Of a DNA stretch of 64,000 nt, positions 23,808 to 58,993 are shown in pieces. Each line of letters begins with the position of its first letter. The stretch's first letter is position 1. The stretch is taken from positions 124,001 through 188,000 of the IMG/VR virus record IMGVR_UViG_3300048927_000250, one strand, 5' to 3'. The position numbers and the translations under genes are program-made. Below the pieces are notes generated by a model, which had not been told where the DNA came from, made no database searches, and saw only the letters and a list, made by a program, of their open reading frames with translations.

Positions 23808-24338
23808 ATGCCTGTTTCAAAGAACAACCGTAAAACCAAAAAGGTCAAAAAACAAAAAGGTTACCGCCCGGTTCGTACACTTCCGGGGTACAAGCTGGTT
23901 AAAGAAACCTGCCAGAAGATTGATGACATCTTGTTCGAGACTGCAAAGCTCGCCAAGATTGTGGGTGTGATGGAAGACCAGTTCTCTCCGGAACACAAGA
24001 TTGAATCGCAAGCGCACCTGCGGGCGATTATTGAAGTGCTGGCTCCGGGTAAAGCCATTGATGCACAGGGCGTGGAAGTGGAATACGCCGCCTTCCCACT
24101 GCGTGTCTCTGCGCTGGAAAAAGAAGCGGATAAGATTGCTGCGCGTGCGCACGCAGACGACCTGGAGTTCGTCCCGATTCTGAACATGGCTGAAAATTAC
24201 CTGTCCACCCTGATTACGGGTACCGGTGAAGCCATTTCTCAACTGGCCATTCTCGTTGACACTTACGCACCACGTGAAGACGGCGTGAGCGAAGTGCTGG
24301 AAAAGCAAAAGGAAGAAACTGATGTCCAACCTGCCTGA
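23808..24338 (+). CDS. Hypothetical protein with a Lys-rich N-terminus
   Basis: 176 aa; SD AAGGA. Confidence 0.65.
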   Translation: MPVSKNNRKTKKVKKQKGYRPVRTLPGYKLVKETCQKIDDILFETAKLAKIVGVMEDQFSPEHKIESQAHLRAIIEVLAPGKAIDAQGVEVEYAAFPLRVSALEKEADKIAARAHADDLEFVPILNMAENYLSTLITGTGEAISQLAILVDTYAPREDGVSEVLEKQKEETDVQPA

Positions 24339-26145
24339 AGATACCCCGCCACTCCCGGCGGGTCTACGTCCGTTACCCGATACCGCATTTAAAGACGATG
24401 ATGCGGTCGTCGAAGTCGTCAGCCAGCAGCCGGAGATTGCTCAGGTGGCTGCTGAACCTGCTCCCCAGCAAACTGAACCTGTTGCTGATGCCCAACCCGT
24501 TCCTGAAGCGGTAACTGAAGCAACGGCGACTGCCACTGACCTACCGAAAGACGCCACCGTGTCTGACGATGATGCGCCAGTGGAACAGGCCCCAGAAGTG
24601 AGCGAAGTCGGGTTCTTCTTTGATGACGACAAAGTGGAAGGGAAAGTTGACCTTTCTCGTTCGCCATTAAAGGATGCGTCGAATAAGGCTAACTTCTCAG
24701 CGAACCTGTCTCTGCTGCGCACCACTCTGGAGGATTACTACCTCCGCGGTGAGAGCATGGGCGACATGGCGGGACTGGATGATTACAACTGGTTCCTGGC
24801 CATGCGTGATGCTATCGACTCGTCTCTCTCCGGTAAAGGTCTGACTGAAGCTGTGGTGCGTGACCAAGCGCACTGGGTGAACGAAATCGCCACCGGGAAG
24901 AAAGGGCGTGAACTTCGTCTGCGTAAGACCCTGTTCAAACGTCCTGAAGGTCAGAAGAACGGTCAGGCGTTGGTGGGCAGTCGTGCTACTGAAGCGTTCG
25001 TTACCGGTACAGGTATCGGTCACCCGGTTCAGGTTCCTCTGTGGCGCACCGGTATCTGGGTGACCATGCGTACCCCGTCTATCGGTTACCTGGCCGAGAT
25101 TGACCGTGCGCTGGCGTTTGCCCGTCCTGAGCTCGGCATGGACACGTCTGGGATGTTGAACTCCAACGAAGCGTTGCTGTTCGAAGAAATCCTGGTTGAT
25201 GCTGCACTGCGTCTGGTAACGTCTACCAGCTACCCGATTGCCTCTTCGCCGCTGGAACTGAAAGAAGTCATCAGTGCCCACGACAAAGACCAGTTAATCT
25301 GGGGGATGGCTGTGGCGGCGTGGCCGGATGGTACTGACATTGCGATTCCGTGTACTGACGGTGAATGTCGTCACACTGACCGCGTCTTTGCTTCTCTGCT
25401 GCGTATGTCCTGGGTGGATGAAGGTCGTCTCACCACGGCACAACGTACCCACATGGACCGCGCGGGTACCGGTCGTGTAACGGATGAAGACCTGGAGAAA
25501 TACCAGGCTGACTTCCTGACGCACGAGAACGAGTACTTCGAGTACAAGAGTCGTCGCTTCAACTTCTTCGTTTCCACGCTGGCAGAATACTTCGCAAACG
25601 GTCGTCAATGGATTAACTCCGTGAACCGTGCGCTGGTTGAAGCCATGGGTGAAGACCTGGAAGGGAATGACCAGAAGCGTGCTGCGCTAATCAACAGCCT
25701 GATTAGTTCAGAGCAACTCTGTCGTTACGGTCACTACATCCGTAACATCGAAATACCGAACCCGGAAGATGAAGACTCCCCTGACACCATCGACGGGGAA
25801 GATGAGATTCGCGATATCCTGAAACTGCTGTCCGCAGAACCGGCTACCGTGAACGAACTGTTGCGTGCGGTGGATAGCTATATCCAGAACAGCATGGTTT
25901 CCCTCATCGCCTCCATCAACGTGCCGTGCTCGGCGTGTGGTAAACTTCACCTGAACCGTGGAGGTGAAGCACGACTGATTCTGCCGTTCAATGCTGCACT
26001 GGGTTTTTTTACCCTTGCGCAACGCAAGATGGTTCACGCGGGGATTCAGCCGCTGACCGACCTTTCGACGTTAGGCATCCGGAATTTTGTACAACAGGTC
26101 TCGGCGAACGCGTCTATGGCGTCCTCGAGTCTGCCGGTAGCTTAA
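24322..26145 (+). CDS. Conserved zinc-binding protein (phiKZ gp77-like); putative tail/baseplate-hub assembly chaperone
   Basis: 607 aa; CxxxxCxH and CxxC pairs; slippery GGGTTTTTTT near the 3' end. Confidence 0.65.
   Translation: MSNLPEDTPPLPAGLRPLPDTAFKDDDAVVEVVSQQPEIAQVAAEPAPQQTEPVADAQPVPEAVTEATATATDLPKDATVSDDDAPVEQAPEVSEVGFFFDDDKVEGKVDLSRSPLKDASNKANFSANLSLLRTTLEDYYLRGESMGDMAGLDDYNWFLAMRDAIDSSLSGKGLTEAVVRDQAHWVNEIATGKKGRELRLRKTLFKRPEGQKNGQALVGSRATEAFVTGTGIGHPVQVPLWRTGIWVTMRTPSIGYLAEIDRALAFARPELGMDTSGMLNSNEALLFEEILVDAALRLVTSTSYPIASSPLELKEVISAHDKDQLIWGMAVAAWPDGTDIAIPCTDGECRHTDRVFASLLRMSWVDEGRLTTAQRTHMDRAGTGRVTDEDLEKYQADFLTHENEYFEYKSRRFNFFVSTLAEYFANGRQWINSVNRALVEAMGEDLEGNDQKRAALINSLISSEQLCRYGHYIRNIEIPNPEDEDSPDTIDGEDEIRDILKLLSAEPATVNELLRAVDSYIQNSMVSLIASINVPCSACGKLHLNRGGEARLILPFNAALGFFTLAQRKMVHAGIQPLTDLSTLGIRNFVQQVSANASMASSSLPVA
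26001..26033 (+). other. Candidate -1 programmed ribosomal frameshift site
   Basis: GGGTTTTTTT followed by hairpin CTTGCG-CAA-CGCAAG; the -1 frame is open from 25968 to 26489. Confidence 0.7.
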
Positions 26146-26489
26146 CGGAGTTTCAGGCCAAGTTAGCGCTGCGACGGGCGTACGACCTGGACCACCGTAT
26201 CTACACCCCCGAATACGCCGCCAAACATCCGTACGCTCCCATGGAGATGCATAAGACGGAGATGGCGGCTAACCGAGGCATGTACGAGGCGTTAGTGGAA
26301 AAGTTCCGTGTCTACCGCATGAAGGACCTCTACGGGTATAACTACTCCGAGTTCCTTCTGTTACCGAATGACACGGCCCAGATGTTAATCCGGGATGCCA
26401 TCAAAGCGTCTGCTGCGGAAAACAAGCAAGACGCTGCTGCGGCGCAACTGGCTGATGAGTTGCGTAAGTTAGAAGGGAATAAGCAATAG
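26010..26489 (+). CDS. phiKZ gp76-like ORF, probably the -1 frameshift extension of the upstream gene
   Basis: Frame open well upstream of the first ATG (26241), which has no SD; ends immediately before a terminator. Confidence 0.6.
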   Translation, partial: YPCATQDGSRGDSAADRPFDVRHPEFCTTGLGERVYGVLESAGSLTEFQAKLALRRAYDLDHRIYTPEYAAKHPYAPMEMHKTEMAANRGMYEALVEKFRVYRMKDLYGYNYSEFLLLPNDTAQMLIRDAIKASAAENKQDAAAAQLADELRKLEGNKQ

Positions 26490-26527
26490 CCTTACCGTAC
26501 CTTCGGGTACGGTAAGGTTCTTTTATG
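26490..26527 (+). terminator. Intrinsic terminator
   Basis: CCTTACCGTACC-TTCG-GGTACGGTAAGG followed by TTCTTTTATG. Confidence 0.9.
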
Positions 26528-26573: not shown

Positions 26574-27206
26574 ATGGAAGCTAATCTGATGGGGTCGAGA
26601 AAGAAATCAAACGTCGTCGTGGACATTGACTTCGCAAACGCTGTAGTGGGCGACAAAACCCTGAGCAGTAAGATAGGTGGGTATAACTTCGTCCGGAAGG
26701 CCGGGACCGGTACCGCAAACGGCGATGATGGCGTTGTGGATGACCCAACGTACGGGAAGTGTTACCGTTTTAATGGCGTGACGTATTTTGAGGACGCAAT
26801 ATTACGTCCAGGTATCTGGAATAAAGAGTATCGCATCACCATCAGCTTCCAGAGTTTGTCCTCTCGGGCAGAGGCGGTATTCGGTACCGGGGATTATAAC
26901 CCTTCTCCTCAAGTAGGGTCGTCACTTAGCATTAACAACTACGCCAGCCAATGGATACAGTACTTCATGTGCAGTGGGGCTTACCAGAGGGTGCTATTAG
27001 ACGGTGCACGTCCAGCTGTCATGGAAACTCTGGTAATCACCCGGCGTTCAACGGGGATAACCATCGAGAGTACTCGAACGGGGCAAAAGAACACCTACCC
27101 AGACTTTAATACAGGTGGTGAAACCTTCTGGCGTATTGGCGTGGCTCAGAACCCGGCATACTGCTTCACGGGACTGTTAAAGTCGTTGAAGATTGAGTTG
27201 CTCTAG
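26574..27206 (+). CDS. Putative virion protein, ConA/LamG-like beta-sandwich, paralog 1
   Basis: Shares DxDFAxAxVGxK, GANGDxGVVxDPTYGKCYxFxG and FTGxLKSL with the next gene. Confidence 0.6.
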   Translation: MEANLMGSRKKSNVVVDIDFANAVVGDKTLSSKIGGYNFVRKAGTGTANGDDGVVDDPTYGKCYRFNGVTYFEDAILRPGIWNKEYRITISFQSLSSRAEAVFGTGDYNPSPQVGSSLSINNYASQWIQYFMCSGAYQRVLLDGARPAVMETLVITRRSTGITIESTRTGQKNTYPDFNTGGETFWRIGVAQNPAYCFTGLLKSLKIELL

Positions 27207-27217
27207 GGGAGTCAAAG

Positions 27218-27859
27218 ATGCTTGAATCTAACTTGTTCGGCGGGAAACACAAAAAAGTATTGTTGGACATCAACTTTGCTGATGCGGCCGTGGGCAGTAA
27301 AGTTATCACCGACTCTGGTCCCCTGGGGATACCGCTCACGCGTGCTGTCGTTGCAGGTGGTGCGAATGGAGACGGCGTAGTCAACGACCCCACGTATGGG
27401 AAGTGCTACTACTTCGATGGGTACGCGTATTTTCAGAACCTGTCACCGGTGTTGAATTTGGCGGACAGTAACTACGAGTTGACAATAGAGTTAGCGTTGG
27501 TGGGTAGTGGATTCATGTGCACGTTCGCTACGGGTGACTACCCGGCTGCCAACAACATCAAGAAAGGACTGGAGTTACTGCACAACCAACTCAGTCAGCC
27601 TATTCAGGTCTTCCAGACCACGGACGCGGGAGCGTTTCAACGCACTTACGGTTATGGTAGTGCCAATAACCAAATGTTGAAGCTCACGGTAAAAGAGGAC
27701 AGTACGAACATTACCGTCTCCAACAATCAAAACAGTAACCAGGCTGTTGCTGCCAGATTCCGGACTGGGGGTGATTCGTACCTGATGTTGGGGACGTCTC
27801 ACGGACTGGCTAACCGTTTCACGGGATACTTGAAGTCTCTACGGGTTGTCAAACTGTAA
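27218..27859 (+). CDS. Putative virion protein, ConA/LamG-like beta-sandwich, paralog 2
   Basis: Tandem paralog of 26574..27206; SD GGAG. Confidence 0.6.
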   Translation: MLESNLFGGKHKKVLLDINFADAAVGSKVITDSGPLGIPLTRAVVAGGANGDGVVNDPTYGKCYYFDGYAYFQNLSPVLNLADSNYELTIELALVGSGFMCTFATGDYPAANNIKKGLELLHNQLSQPIQVFQTTDAGAFQRTYGYGSANNQMLKLTVKEDSTNITVSNNQNSNQAVAARFRTGGDSYLMLGTSHGLANRFTGYLKSLRVVKL

Positions 27860-27865
27860 CGAAAC

Positions 27866-27900
27866 AAAAAAAAAGAAAGAGGGGCGAAAGCCCCTCTTTT
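27866..27900. terminator. Bidirectional terminator
   Basis: AAAGAGGGGC-GAAA-GCCCCTCTTT flanked by A and T tracts. Confidence 0.9.
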
Positions 27901-28363
27901 ATTCTCCATCCACCTCGTAAGGGTGGTGGACATCAATCTCTAAGTCAGTGGGGCCTAGAATGCGCTGTATCATCGGATAAACCTCCCAATGTTTCAGCCA
28001 CCCATTTCCACACCCGGGCATCGTCATCGCGATATCGAAGAGCCCACGCTGGTCATACGTGTCTCTGAGCTTAATCAGTCCCTGTTCAACCCACTCCATC
28101 TTAGACGGGGCTTTCCAGTCTACTTTAGTGGGGAACAACAGGATGATTTTTCCGTCGGGCATCCGCTCGCTGTACAACATGCCAATCTTGAACATCCCGG
28201 CGCGGCACCACTTACGGTACTTTTCGTAGAGGGCAGGATAGTTATCACGGCAATCCTTCGCAATCCCCGCACCCATCGCCCCAACGCAGTTCACCGTTAT
28301 CATGATGCACTCTTTATCAGTGTCCCAGATGTTCTGGTTCTTGAGCTTCCTGATGATTGCCAC
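27899..28363 (-). CDS. Macrodomain ADP-ribose hydrolase, DarG/TARG1-like
   Basis: VNCVGAMGAGIA, LFPTKVDWKAPS and IAMTMPGCGNG motifs. Confidence 0.9.
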   Translation of the reverse strand: MAIIRKLKNQNIWDTDKECIMITVNCVGAMGAGIAKDCRDNYPALYEKYRKWCRAGMFKIGMLYSERMPDGKIILLFPTKVDWKAPSKMEWVEQGLIKLRDTYDQRGLFDIAMTMPGCGNGWLKHWEVYPMIQRILGPTDLEIDVHHPYEVDGE

Positions 28364-58955: not shown

Positions 58956-58993
58956 AGAAAAAAAAAGAAGGGGCGCAATGCCCCTTCTTTTTT
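58956..58993. terminator. Bidirectional terminator
   Basis: AAGAAGGGGC-GCAAT-GCCCCTTCTT with A and T tracts. Confidence 0.9.

Follow-up and report, generated by a model that had tools for sequence, protein, structure and literature searches.

A conserved T-run and a probable -1 frameshift in a core gene of phiKZ-like jumbo phages

The locus

The stretch of DNA analysed here (the window) comprises 64,000 nucleotides of IMG/VR virus record IMGVR_UViG_3300048927_000250, positions 124,001 to 188,000, and carries a same-strand unit that includes a core gene of phiKZ-like giant phages (Table 1). The unit consists of a small gene resembling phiKZ gp78, a 607-codon gene (here gene A) belonging to the family of phiKZ gp77, and a downstream frame, here B, which corresponds to phiKZ gp76.4; the naming of the pair in the original prediction is right in this respect (PHIKZ077 and PHIKZ076.4). 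Near its 3' end gene A reads CTG GGT TTT TTT ACC (25999-26013), and an inverted repeat follows immediately. The -1 frame has a TGA stop at 25965-25967, is then open as far as a TAG at 26487-26489, and contains no ATG, GTG or TTG before the ATG at 26241, which is not preceded by any Shine-Dalgarno-like (SD-like) motif. A slip of one base backwards on the T-run would join residues 1-563 of A to a 159-residue extension, giving a protein of 722 aa with the junction GFF|YPC, whose predicted tryptic junction peptide is LILPFNAALGFFYPCATQDGSR.

Table 1. Features of the locus, in window coordinates
Coordinates	Strand	Feature	Observations
23808..24338	+	Upstream small gene (176 aa, phiKZ gp78-like)	Overlaps the start of A by 17 nt; first gene of the same-strand unit; precedes A also in Ea277G, Moabite, FBKp24, SPLA10, PCH45, Eowyn, D6, PA7, phiKZ, SPN3US and AgentSmith; family poorly conserved, with no Pfam or PHROG match
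24322..26145	+	Gene A, zero-frame product of 607 aa; phiKZ gp77 / Goslar gp081 / RAY gp267 family, phrog_4585, core gene cg18 (cg18 table of Prichard et al. 2023)	N-terminal ~110 aa disordered, then a folded body with two conserved Cys pairs (C344/C349 and C536/C539); AlphaFold2 pLDDT 80.8, pTM 0.79; stop at 26143-26145
26004..26010	+	Slip site, in-phase heptamer T_TTT_TTT	Codons GGT TTT TTT at 26002-26010, encoding the invariant Phe-Phe 562-563
26010..26489	+	-1 frame extension (B), 159 codons plus TAG, read after the slip (T26010 is read twice)	Full -1 open frame 25968-26489; predicted fusion 24322-26010 joined to 26010-26486; phrog_12109 match from about nt 26097; all-helical model, pLDDT 84.5
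26004..26145	+	Dual-coding overlap	Zero-frame tail of A (44 codons, conserved within this clade) and start of the -1 extension
26014..26028	+	6-bp hairpin CTTGCG-CAA-CGCAAG	Present, but not a conserved stimulator
26241..26489	+	82-aa ORF called by annotation pipelines as a separate gene	Homologous 81-aa CDS annotated in Ea277G and as CF95_gp001 in PhiEaH1; most likely an artefact of the missing start, being only the C-terminal half of the extension
26488..26519	+	Intrinsic-terminator-like hairpin (14-bp stem, TTCG loop, CTTTTAT tail)	Directly after the stop of the extension; ends the gp78-like / A / B unit; a hairpin at the same place has a different stem sequence in Ea277G and PhiEaH1

The observation on which the original prediction rested is confirmed, as all of its sequence statements (the slippery run, the hairpin, the limits of the -1 frame, the ATG without SD, and the sizes of 607 and 722 aa) were reproduced. 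Taken alone, however, the single sequence is not beyond chance: the window holds 11 matches to a T7 run against 12.2 expected, and the hairpin region does not fold better than shuffled sequence (z = -0.57).

Conservation of the run and of the -1 frame

Comparison with relatives is, by contrast, far beyond chance. In 47 non-redundant relatives (20-81% amino acid identity, GC 28-62%), the first Phe codon is TTT in 47/47 (19 expected, z = 9.7), and the base before it is T in 44/47 whatever the amino acid (14.3 expected, z = 9.8). An in-phase heptamer is carried by 42/47, reading T_TTT_TTT in 33 and T_TTT_TTC in 9, while five of the 47 lack a canonical heptamer; the phase of the run is partly fixed by the invariant Phe-Phe, so that being in phase discriminates less than it seems. 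Run lengths range from T5 (one locus) to T8 and never reach 9. The site is also present in phiKZ-type PA7, SPN3US and a Bacillus jumbo phage, where it reads GTT TTT TTA.

The -1 frame stays open for 138-203 codons after the run in every locus, whereas the +1 frame usually closes within 2-15 codons. Because a -1 stop lies only 9-21 nt upstream of the run in many loci, and the stop of A lies 27-132 nt downstream, the shift must occur at or beside the run. No start codon is conserved in the -1 frame: the first ATG, GTG or TTG lies anywhere from -87 to +152 codons relative to the run, 30/47 loci have none before the conserved motif, and annotated starts in relatives fall at non-homologous positions, with called N-termini scattered over profile positions 1-55. 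The B family forms 1788 clusters in metagenome protein sets. In five of the 47 loci a -1 frame start codon does lie upstream of the run, which could allow independent initiation there. In phiKZ-type genomes about 75 conserved codons lie beyond the stop of A with no start codon.

The original prediction had named three findings that would count against it, and none of them was obtained. The slippery site and the open -1 frame are conserved family-wide. Homology of the downstream frame begins at or near the slip site and not at ATG 26241: tblastn hits with the extension start at its residue 1, a near-invariant Phe (F26) maps to nt 26085, and codon-position conservation shows the third positions of both frames conserved at 26004-26033 (0.86 and 0.80), with the least-conserved position switching from the A frame to the B frame at about 26094-26123. 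As for a T-run of different length, three independent Iapetusvirus genomes and all other relatives keep a run that still needs a -1 shift; the stretch 25963-26179 is identical in three genomes that are 95-97% identical overall.

Two details of the original prediction did not hold up. The overlapping heptamer G_GGT_TTT is rejected as the slip site, since the base before GGT is G, C, T or A even in the closest clade. The hairpin is likewise not conserved, with one pair lost without compensation in L068/L070 (L numbers denote individual relatives' loci), and more lost in Moabite and PCH45. Across the family the 60 nt downstream of the run fold no better than a control region (Mann-Whitney p = 0.68), although some lineages (L031, L032, L039) have strong hairpins with stems of 10-11 bp. 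An upstream SD-like stimulator was not found either (2/47 loci against 5/47 in the control), and a search of Rfam returned only sub-threshold chance hits, near the terminator. A family-wide stimulatory element was thus not found.

Natural in-frame fusions of A and B were sought and not seen among 29 close homologues (576-626 aa, plus two partial sequences of 352 and 365 aa), 52 IMG/VR loci, or the best 150 of the B-family clusters. Two matches of 686-687 aa in BFVD looked like possible fusions, but are more likely versions of A with a long N-terminus, since SPN3US gp39 is 656 aa and still needs the shift; the phiEaH2 copy was not located. No paper describing the frameshift was found in the literature searched.

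Protein relationships and comparison with known systems

A and B were analysed separately throughout, never as a fused protein, with structural models built from alignments of IMG/VR loci. Searches of Pfam, NCBIfam and PHROG gave no function for A, B or the upstream gene apart from PHROGs of unknown function and one lead discussed below, and profile searches by sequence against the PDB returned nothing. Foldseek comparison of both AlphaFold2 models with the PDB also found nothing (best E = 0.93 for A and 3.8 for B), and BFVD returned only uncharacterised jumbo-phage homologues.

The interpretation offered in the original prediction, that the pair is the long and short tail-assembly chaperone of nucleus-forming phages in the manner of lambda gpG/gpGT, is only partly supported. 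A conserved recoding site does join the gp77-like gene to the gp76.4-like frame, and a -1 frameshift near the end of the first ORF, inferred from the comparative evidence, would produce the long form. As in the lambda-type chaperones of long-tailed phages (reported by Levin et al. 1993 and Xu et al. 2004), the slip enters a frame that has no start codon of its own and gives a short major form and a C-terminally extended minor form, the arrangement is conserved by position rather than by sequence across very distant phages, and the products are probably non-virion proteins. Membership of the lambda G/GT kind, however, is not supported. The pair is not located between tail tube and tape measure genes; it lies in the replication, transcription and nucleus gene block, and its neighbours are gp78-like and gp79 head-protein genes, the vRNAP subunit gene, helicase, nvRNAP, chimallin and DNA polymerase. 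Gene A encodes 533-656 aa across the family rather than about 100-150 aa, no tail-chaperone Pfam family or solved structure matches A or B, and the slip site is a U-run rather than G_GGA_AAG. Tape-measure binding, tail-tube recruitment, absence from virions and late expression were not examined here; the only hint is that Churi gp256 (= phiKZ gp77) is listed as a non-structural protein already detected 15 min after infection (PMC11849849). The gene is not mentioned among Goslar virion proteins in the main text of the Goslar virion paper, nor in the PCH45 Tn-seq text.

A comparison with T4 gp26 and gp51 had been proposed in advance as a check on the chaperone reading, and it gave no similarity to gp51 but a weak, above-null link to gp26 (PF12322, NCBI name gp26 family baseplate hub assembly chaperone). 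The window protein has no hit to PF12322, and 2/45 family members do; the best, L028, scores E = 2.8e-5 and 24.3 bits against a gathering score of 24.5, covering profile positions 107-213 of 219 and ending about 10 aa before the slip site. A narrow gp26 HMM built here did not reproduce this hit, which only Pfam's broader model and hhalign supported. With hhalign, A 285-567 aligns colinearly with gp26 31-208, including both Cys pairs, with a score of 32.1 and P = 7.7e-4 over 173 columns, against null scores with mean 14.3 and maximum 21.1 for shuffled columns (n = 30) and 14.4 for the reversed profile, yet the reported probability is only 25%. Neither the sub-threshold profile hit nor this alignment settles whether A belongs to the gp26 family; no gp26 structure was compared with the model of A, and a requirement for hub assembly was not assayed. 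The gp26 C-terminus (EFFELL-stop) falls on the GFFTLA slip site of A, and one gene would give two related proteins here as in T4, but A has a ~280-aa N-terminal addition and a ~100-aa insertion, T4 encodes Phe-Phe as TTC TTT with no run and no downstream extension, and T4 makes its second product, gp26', by internal initiation and not by recoding. With this weak link to gp26, a role in tail morphogenesis remains plausible.

Other recoded genes offer partial parallels. In the P2 E/E+E' tail chaperone and the T7 capsid 10A/10B frameshifts, U-rich heptamers (T_TTT_TTG and G_GTT_TTC) are decoded by tRNA-Phe close to the end of a phage morphogenetic gene and yield a fixed small fraction of an extended protein without an elaborate stimulator; these are different protein families, the site here is a pure U heptamer, and its conservation spans a whole family of jumbo phages across Proteobacteria and Bacillus hosts. 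The slip sequences of P2 and T7 were not checked here. In dnaX (tau/gamma), a homopolymeric site near a domain boundary likewise gives two isoforms in a set ratio, by a ribosomal -1 frameshift at A_AAA_AAG in E. coli and by transcriptional slippage at an A-run in Thermus, but the dnaX shift truncates the protein whereas the one proposed here extends it, and dnaX has strong SD and hairpin stimulators, none of which are conserved here.

Interpretation of the probable recoding

We hypothesize, with moderate confidence, that gene A and the downstream 82-aa ORF are one gene recoded by programmed -1 ribosomal frameshifting. In this view most ribosomes would read A in frame and give the 607-aa protein, while a fraction would slip back one base on U_UUU_UUU as two tRNA-Phe re-pair in the -1 frame, and continue through the extension to give the 722-aa form. 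What the analysis itself demonstrates is the site, its in-phase conservation, and an open, protein-coding -1 frame without a start codon of its own across the whole phiKZ-like jumbo-phage family; that the shift is ribosomal rather than made in the mRNA, how efficient it is, and that both forms are needed in a fixed ratio are inferences. The in-phase X_XXY_YYZ pattern with a free last base (T, C or A), and runs never longer than T8, fit ribosomal slippage. U_UUU_UUU is shift-prone in E. coli, though weaker than A_AAA_AAG, and U-only heptamers shift poorly in E. coli reporters (PMC5009743). There is no direct evidence here for the trans-frame protein, as no proteomic, Ribo-seq or RNA data were examined.

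The main rival, which we consider possible but less likely, is transcriptional slippage, in which the phage's own multisubunit RNA polymerase, or another polymerase, stutters on the template A-run and adds one U to a fraction of mRNAs, giving the same 722-aa protein by standard translation. It is favoured by the homopolymeric nature of the conserved element, whose length of T6-T8 is kept even in GC-rich genomes where TTT is otherwise nearly absent, by the lack of a conserved ribosomal stimulator, and by the unusual RNA polymerases with which these phages transcribe inside the phage nucleus. Viral polymerases edit at runs as short as A6-A7. AAAAAAA and UUUUUUU are avoided in all frames in enterobacterial genes, which has been attributed partly to transcriptional slippage (PMC4066793). 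On the other hand, the runs fall short of the 9 or more typical of efficient bacterial slippage, and in 9 loci the second codon is TTC and in one TTA, which shortens the run but keeps a canonical heptamer, as a length-driven mechanism would not favour; the extra T is added on the 5' side, in phase (44/47), and never on the 3' side. Run length and phase leave the choice undecided, given the constraint that Phe-Phe places on phase and the shorter runs used by some viral polymerases.

The remaining alternatives appear very unlikely. Every public record annotates two ordinary genes, with the downstream frame translated on its own from ATG 26241, from a non-canonical start or by re-initiation after the stop of A, and the upstream -1 start codons in five loci and the absence of a demonstrated trans-frame protein would be compatible with this. 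Yet ATG 26241 lies 156 nt downstream of a near-invariant residue and after the conserved LRRAYDLD motif, coding periodicity in the -1 frame begins about 120-150 nt upstream of it, and amino acid conservation cannot explain why synonymous TTC is never used for the first Phe or why the preceding wobble base is so often T. Still less likely is a homopolymer sequencing error concealing T8 and a single 722-aa ORF, or a recently broken pseudogene: although homopolymer length errors are common in some sequencing chemistries, the window, Ea277G, PhiEaH1 and an IMG/VR contig all read T7, about 50 independently sequenced relatives with runs of T5-T8 in different phases all need exactly -1, and the zero-frame tail after the run is itself conserved.

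Function is inferred only weakly. As A carries a distant gp26-like core that ends at the slip site, the pair may act as a short and a long morphogenetic factor, with the helical extension as an added adaptor. A more speculative reading, which we regard as unlikely though not excluded, is that the pair is the jumbo-phage counterpart of gpG/gpGT built on a gp26-like scaffold, a hub or tape-measure assembly chaperone whose frameshift-added helical domain recruits the next tail component; this would also give the first mechanistic handle on what T4 gp26 does. A compatible possibility is that the shift is written into the mRNA by the phage's own RNA polymerase inside the phage nucleus.

While -1 frameshifting in phage genes is already known, its probable occurrence here concerns cg18, one of the roughly 70 core genes shared by nucleus-forming jumbo phages and one without an assigned function. 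If the recoding is real, every genome of the family encodes an unannotated protein of about 690-750 aa, and the small downstream gene, with its arbitrary start codons in public records, would be an annotation artefact. The site also offers a clean natural test case of a U-only heptamer that works without a conserved stimulator, and synonymous slip-site changes give a simple genetic handle on the function of a core gene, for which the weak link to T4 gp26 suggests baseplate hub assembly as the place to look. That the site is kept in phages of Pseudomonas, Erwinia, Salmonella, Klebsiella, Serratia, Ralstonia, Vibrio and Bacillus points to a need for both protein forms in a set ratio.

The gene pair and its surroundings

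The window comes from an Iapetusvirus-like Erwinia jumbo phage that is 95-97% identical in DNA to vB_Ea277G and PhiEaH1, and the 607-aa protein of gene A is encoded with 100% identity on an IMG/VR contig (locus L012). The sequence features named in the original prediction are present: gene A contains a T7 run close to its 3' end, the -1 frame across this run is open over a long stretch whose first ATG, GTG or TTG is the ATG at 26241, and an inverted repeat follows the run. As had been claimed, a -1 slip after Phe563 adds 159 residues, giving a protein of 722 aa. An upstream gene of 176 aa overlaps the start of A, such that the three frames form one same-strand unit, and a strong terminator-like hairpin follows the stop of the extension. 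The stem of this hairpin has a different sequence in Ea277G and PhiEaH1 (CCCACCGTAGC...GCTACGGTGGG) than in the window (CCTTACCGTACC...GGTACGGTAAGG); the structure is kept while the sequence has changed. The linear PhiEaH1 record (NC_023610 / KF623294) starts inside gene A; its gp77 homologue is therefore split across the record ends and not annotated at all, and CF95_gp001 is the truncated 81-aa tail of the extension.

Features of the gene A locus and its neighborhood (window positions)
Feature	Position	Strand	Remarks
Gene A	24322-26145		607 aa
N-terminus of A (residues 1-110)	24322-24650		Low-complexity acidic, Pro/Ala/Glu-rich; predicted disordered (pLDDT 40-55); length and sequence vary greatly among relatives
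Position 1 of the PhiEaH1 record	~24746		Falls inside gene A
Stop of the -1 frame upstream of the run	25965-7		TGA
Codons CTG GGT TTT TTT ACC in A	25999-26013
T7 run	26004-26010
Zone conserved in both frames	26004-26033		Third-position conservation 0.86 and 0.80
Zero-frame tail of A	26011-26142
Inverted repeat	26014-26028
Near-invariant Phe of the extension (F26)	26085
Start of third-position relaxation in the -1 frame	about 26094
First ATG, GTG or TTG of the -1 frame	26241		ATG
Stop of the -1 frame	26487-9		TAG
Terminator-like hairpin	26488-26519		Follows the extension's stop
First tandem paralogue	26574-27206	+	210 aa; matches phrog_6011 ("virion structural protein")
Second tandem paralogue	27218-27859	+	213 aa; matches phrog_6011 ("virion structural protein")
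A9 run	27866-27874	+	T9 on the - strand; just after the stop of the ORF 27218-27859 and before the next ORF
ORF	27899-28363	-
A9 run	58958-58966	+	T9 on the - strand

The T7 run is not more than expected by chance from this sequence alone: such runs occur 11 times in the window against 12.2 expected, and the 60 nt after the run fold no better than shuffled sequences (z = -0.57). The longest homopolymers in the window are in fact two A9 runs, although whether either lies inside a gene or acts as a slippage site was not examined. The two genes beyond the terminator are tandem paralogues on the same strand.

Conservation of the site and of the -1 frame

To evaluate the site, we collected the homologous junction from annotated phages (Moabite, FBKp24, SPLA10, PCH45, Totoro, Eowyn, D6, the phiKZ-type PA7, SPN3US, and the Bacillus phage AgentSmith), and added 52 IMG/VR loci and four metagenome contigs of the same clade. 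After removal of near-duplicates, 47 loci remained, at 20-81% amino-acid identity and with GC contents of 28-62%. Conservation of the slippery site and of an open -1 frame among relatives had been named beforehand as a point on which the prediction would stand or fall, and both are conserved. Each locus has a single T-run of 5 or more within the last 300 nt of A, and the run sits on an invariant Phe-Phe, 27-132 nt before the stop of A. The first Phe codon is TTT in 47/47 loci, whereas each gene's own TTT/TTC usage predicts 19 (z = 9.7), and the base before it is T in 44/47, whatever the amino acid (GGT, ACT, ATT, GTT, CTT, AGT, CAT, TAT, GCT), whereas third-position T frequency predicts 14.3 (z = 9.8). 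In several GC-rich genomes these are the only TTT codons in the gene. The loci are related and the statistics treat them as separate observations, so these counts are not independent trials; at this divergence, however, synonymous sites are saturated elsewhere in the gene (third-position pairwise identity is 0.3-0.45). The in-phase heptamers are T_TTT_TTT (33 loci), T_TTT_TTC (9), N_TTT_TTT (3) and other (2), and run lengths are T5 (1), T6 (8), T7 (29) and T8 (9), never 9 or more.

After the run, the -1 frame is open for 138-203 codons (median 162) in every locus, while the +1 frame usually closes within 2-15 codons. In many loci a -1 stop lies only 9-21 nt upstream of the run, which together with the stop of A confines any shift to the run and its immediate surroundings. 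The first possible start codon in the -1 frame lies from -87 to +152 codons relative to the run, 30 of 47 loci have none before the first conserved motif, and public annotations start the "gene" at non-homologous places. A profile of the extension finds 1788 clusters among 1.84 billion representative proteins; the best 150 of these are all 104-186 aa, and their called N-termini scatter over profile positions 1-55. No in-frame fusion of A with the extension was seen in the sequences examined.

Homology beginning only at the ATG at 26241 would have counted against the prediction, as stated when it was made, but the extension is conserved from its first residues: tblastn hits start at query residue 1, and both the near-invariant F26 and the conserved LRRAYDLD motif lie upstream of that ATG. 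In nine genomes of this clade and its neighbors, the least-conserved codon position is the third position of A's frame up to 26003, both frames are then conserved over a short zone starting at the run, and the third position of the -1 frame subsequently becomes the least conserved, at least 120 nt upstream of the ATG. In phiKZ-type genomes A stops 10 codons after the run, and about 75 conserved, start-less codons follow outside any overlap, so constraint from an overlapping frame cannot explain the conservation.

Two mechanisms can give the same protein, with a junction between GFF and YPC, and we favor, with moderate confidence, ribosomal -1 slippage on U_UUU_UUY. The conserved element is exactly an in-phase X_XXY_YYZ heptamer with a free last base (T, C, or, in AgentSmith, A), the extra T is always on the 5' side, and the runs are never lengthened beyond T8. 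Transcriptional slippage is less likely but remains possible for three reasons: no conserved ribosomal stimulator exists (downstream folding equals that of the control, p = 0.68, and there is no SD-like motif), U-only heptamers are weak shifters in E. coli (PMC5009743), and these phages use their own RNA polymerases. The conservation of the site and of the -1 frame is what the comparison demonstrates; as no expression data were available, the trans-frame product, its efficiency, and the level at which the shift occurs are all inferred. Three IMG/VR loci (L031, L032 and L039) carry perfect stems of 10-11 bp (ACTCAGCG...CGCTGAGT) 8 nt after their T-runs, a spacing typical of frameshift stimulators, whereas most other relatives, including the window, have nothing comparable; stimulators may therefore be lineage-specific. 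Two details of the original prediction did not hold: the hairpin formed by the inverted repeat loses a pair without compensation in the relatives L068 and L070, and more pairs in Moabite and PCH45, and the proposed heptamer G_GGT_TTT is not conserved. Independent initiation of the downstream frame is poorly supported and very unlikely, and sequencing error even more so.

Protein identity and the gp26 hypothesis

Gene A corresponds to PHIKZ077, and the downstream frame to PHIKZ076.4, which is annotated at only 80 aa. A is core gene cg18 of Prichard et al. 2023 (Goslar gp081, RAY gp267), where it is listed as hypothetical and not unique to chimallin phages. AlphaFold2 gives confident models of both parts: A has a pLDDT of 80.8 and a pTM of 0.79, with a disordered N-terminus of ~110 aa, and the extension has a pLDDT of 84.5 and is predicted to be all-helical, with a long C-terminal helix. 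Neither model has a structural neighbor in the PDB, searches of the PDB by sequence found no relative, and BFVD returns only uncharacterized jumbo-phage proteins.

The one functional lead is T4 gp26, with which, along with gp51, a comparison had been proposed from the outset. PF12322 is the only Pfam family hit by more than chance among 45 family members; the best hit (E = 2.8e-5) reaches 24.3 bits against a gathering score of 24.5, covers profile positions 107-213 of 219, and ends about 10 residues before the slip site. Profile-profile alignment by hhalign places A 285-567 colinearly on gp26 31-208, including both Cys pairs, and sets gp26's C-terminal EFFELL-stop on A's GFFTLA, with a score of 32.1 against a mean of 14.3 and a maximum of 21.1 for 30 column-shuffled nulls and 14.4 for the reversed profile. 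The link is nevertheless sub-threshold and at the level of a hypothesis, and the function is only weakly inferred. T4 itself has TTC TTT and no extension, and gp51 shows no similarity.

The interpretation offered in the original prediction is thus supported only in part: the evidence favors a -1 shift joining the gp77-like gene to the downstream frame, but an identity as a lambda-type G/GT tail chaperone is not supported. The genomic context consists of helicase, RNA polymerase subunits, chimallin, DNA polymerase and PhuZ, A is far too large, no tail-chaperone family matches, and the Churi homologue is listed as non-structural and detected at 15 min after infection (PMC11849849).

Breadth of the probably recoded gene

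A phage -1 frameshift that makes a C-terminally extended form is a familiar kind of event. Searches of a paper library for frameshifting in Chimalliviridae or phiKZ and for gp77/gp076.4, and of the core-genome paper and the 2025 Annual Review, found no description of the present one, and this instance, in this gene family and with this breadth of conservation, appears undescribed; it is of real interest to jumbo-phage and recoding specialists and is directly testable. The same gene pair and an in-phase GTT TTT TTA site occur in the 200-kb Bacillus phage vB_BspM_AgentSmith (MW749006, 9373-11525), in which the gene is annotated "putative baseplate hub assembly protein", and the gene with its inferred recoding therefore reaches beyond the Gram-negative nucleus-forming phages. 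In the Iapetus/Moabite/FBKp24/PCH45 clade, the zero-frame tail after the slip site is long (37-44 aa) and conserved (TLAQ[RH]K...PLT[DN]L.TLG), while in phiKZ-type and most other relatives it is only 9-17 aa; the short form may have gained its own C-terminal function in this clade.
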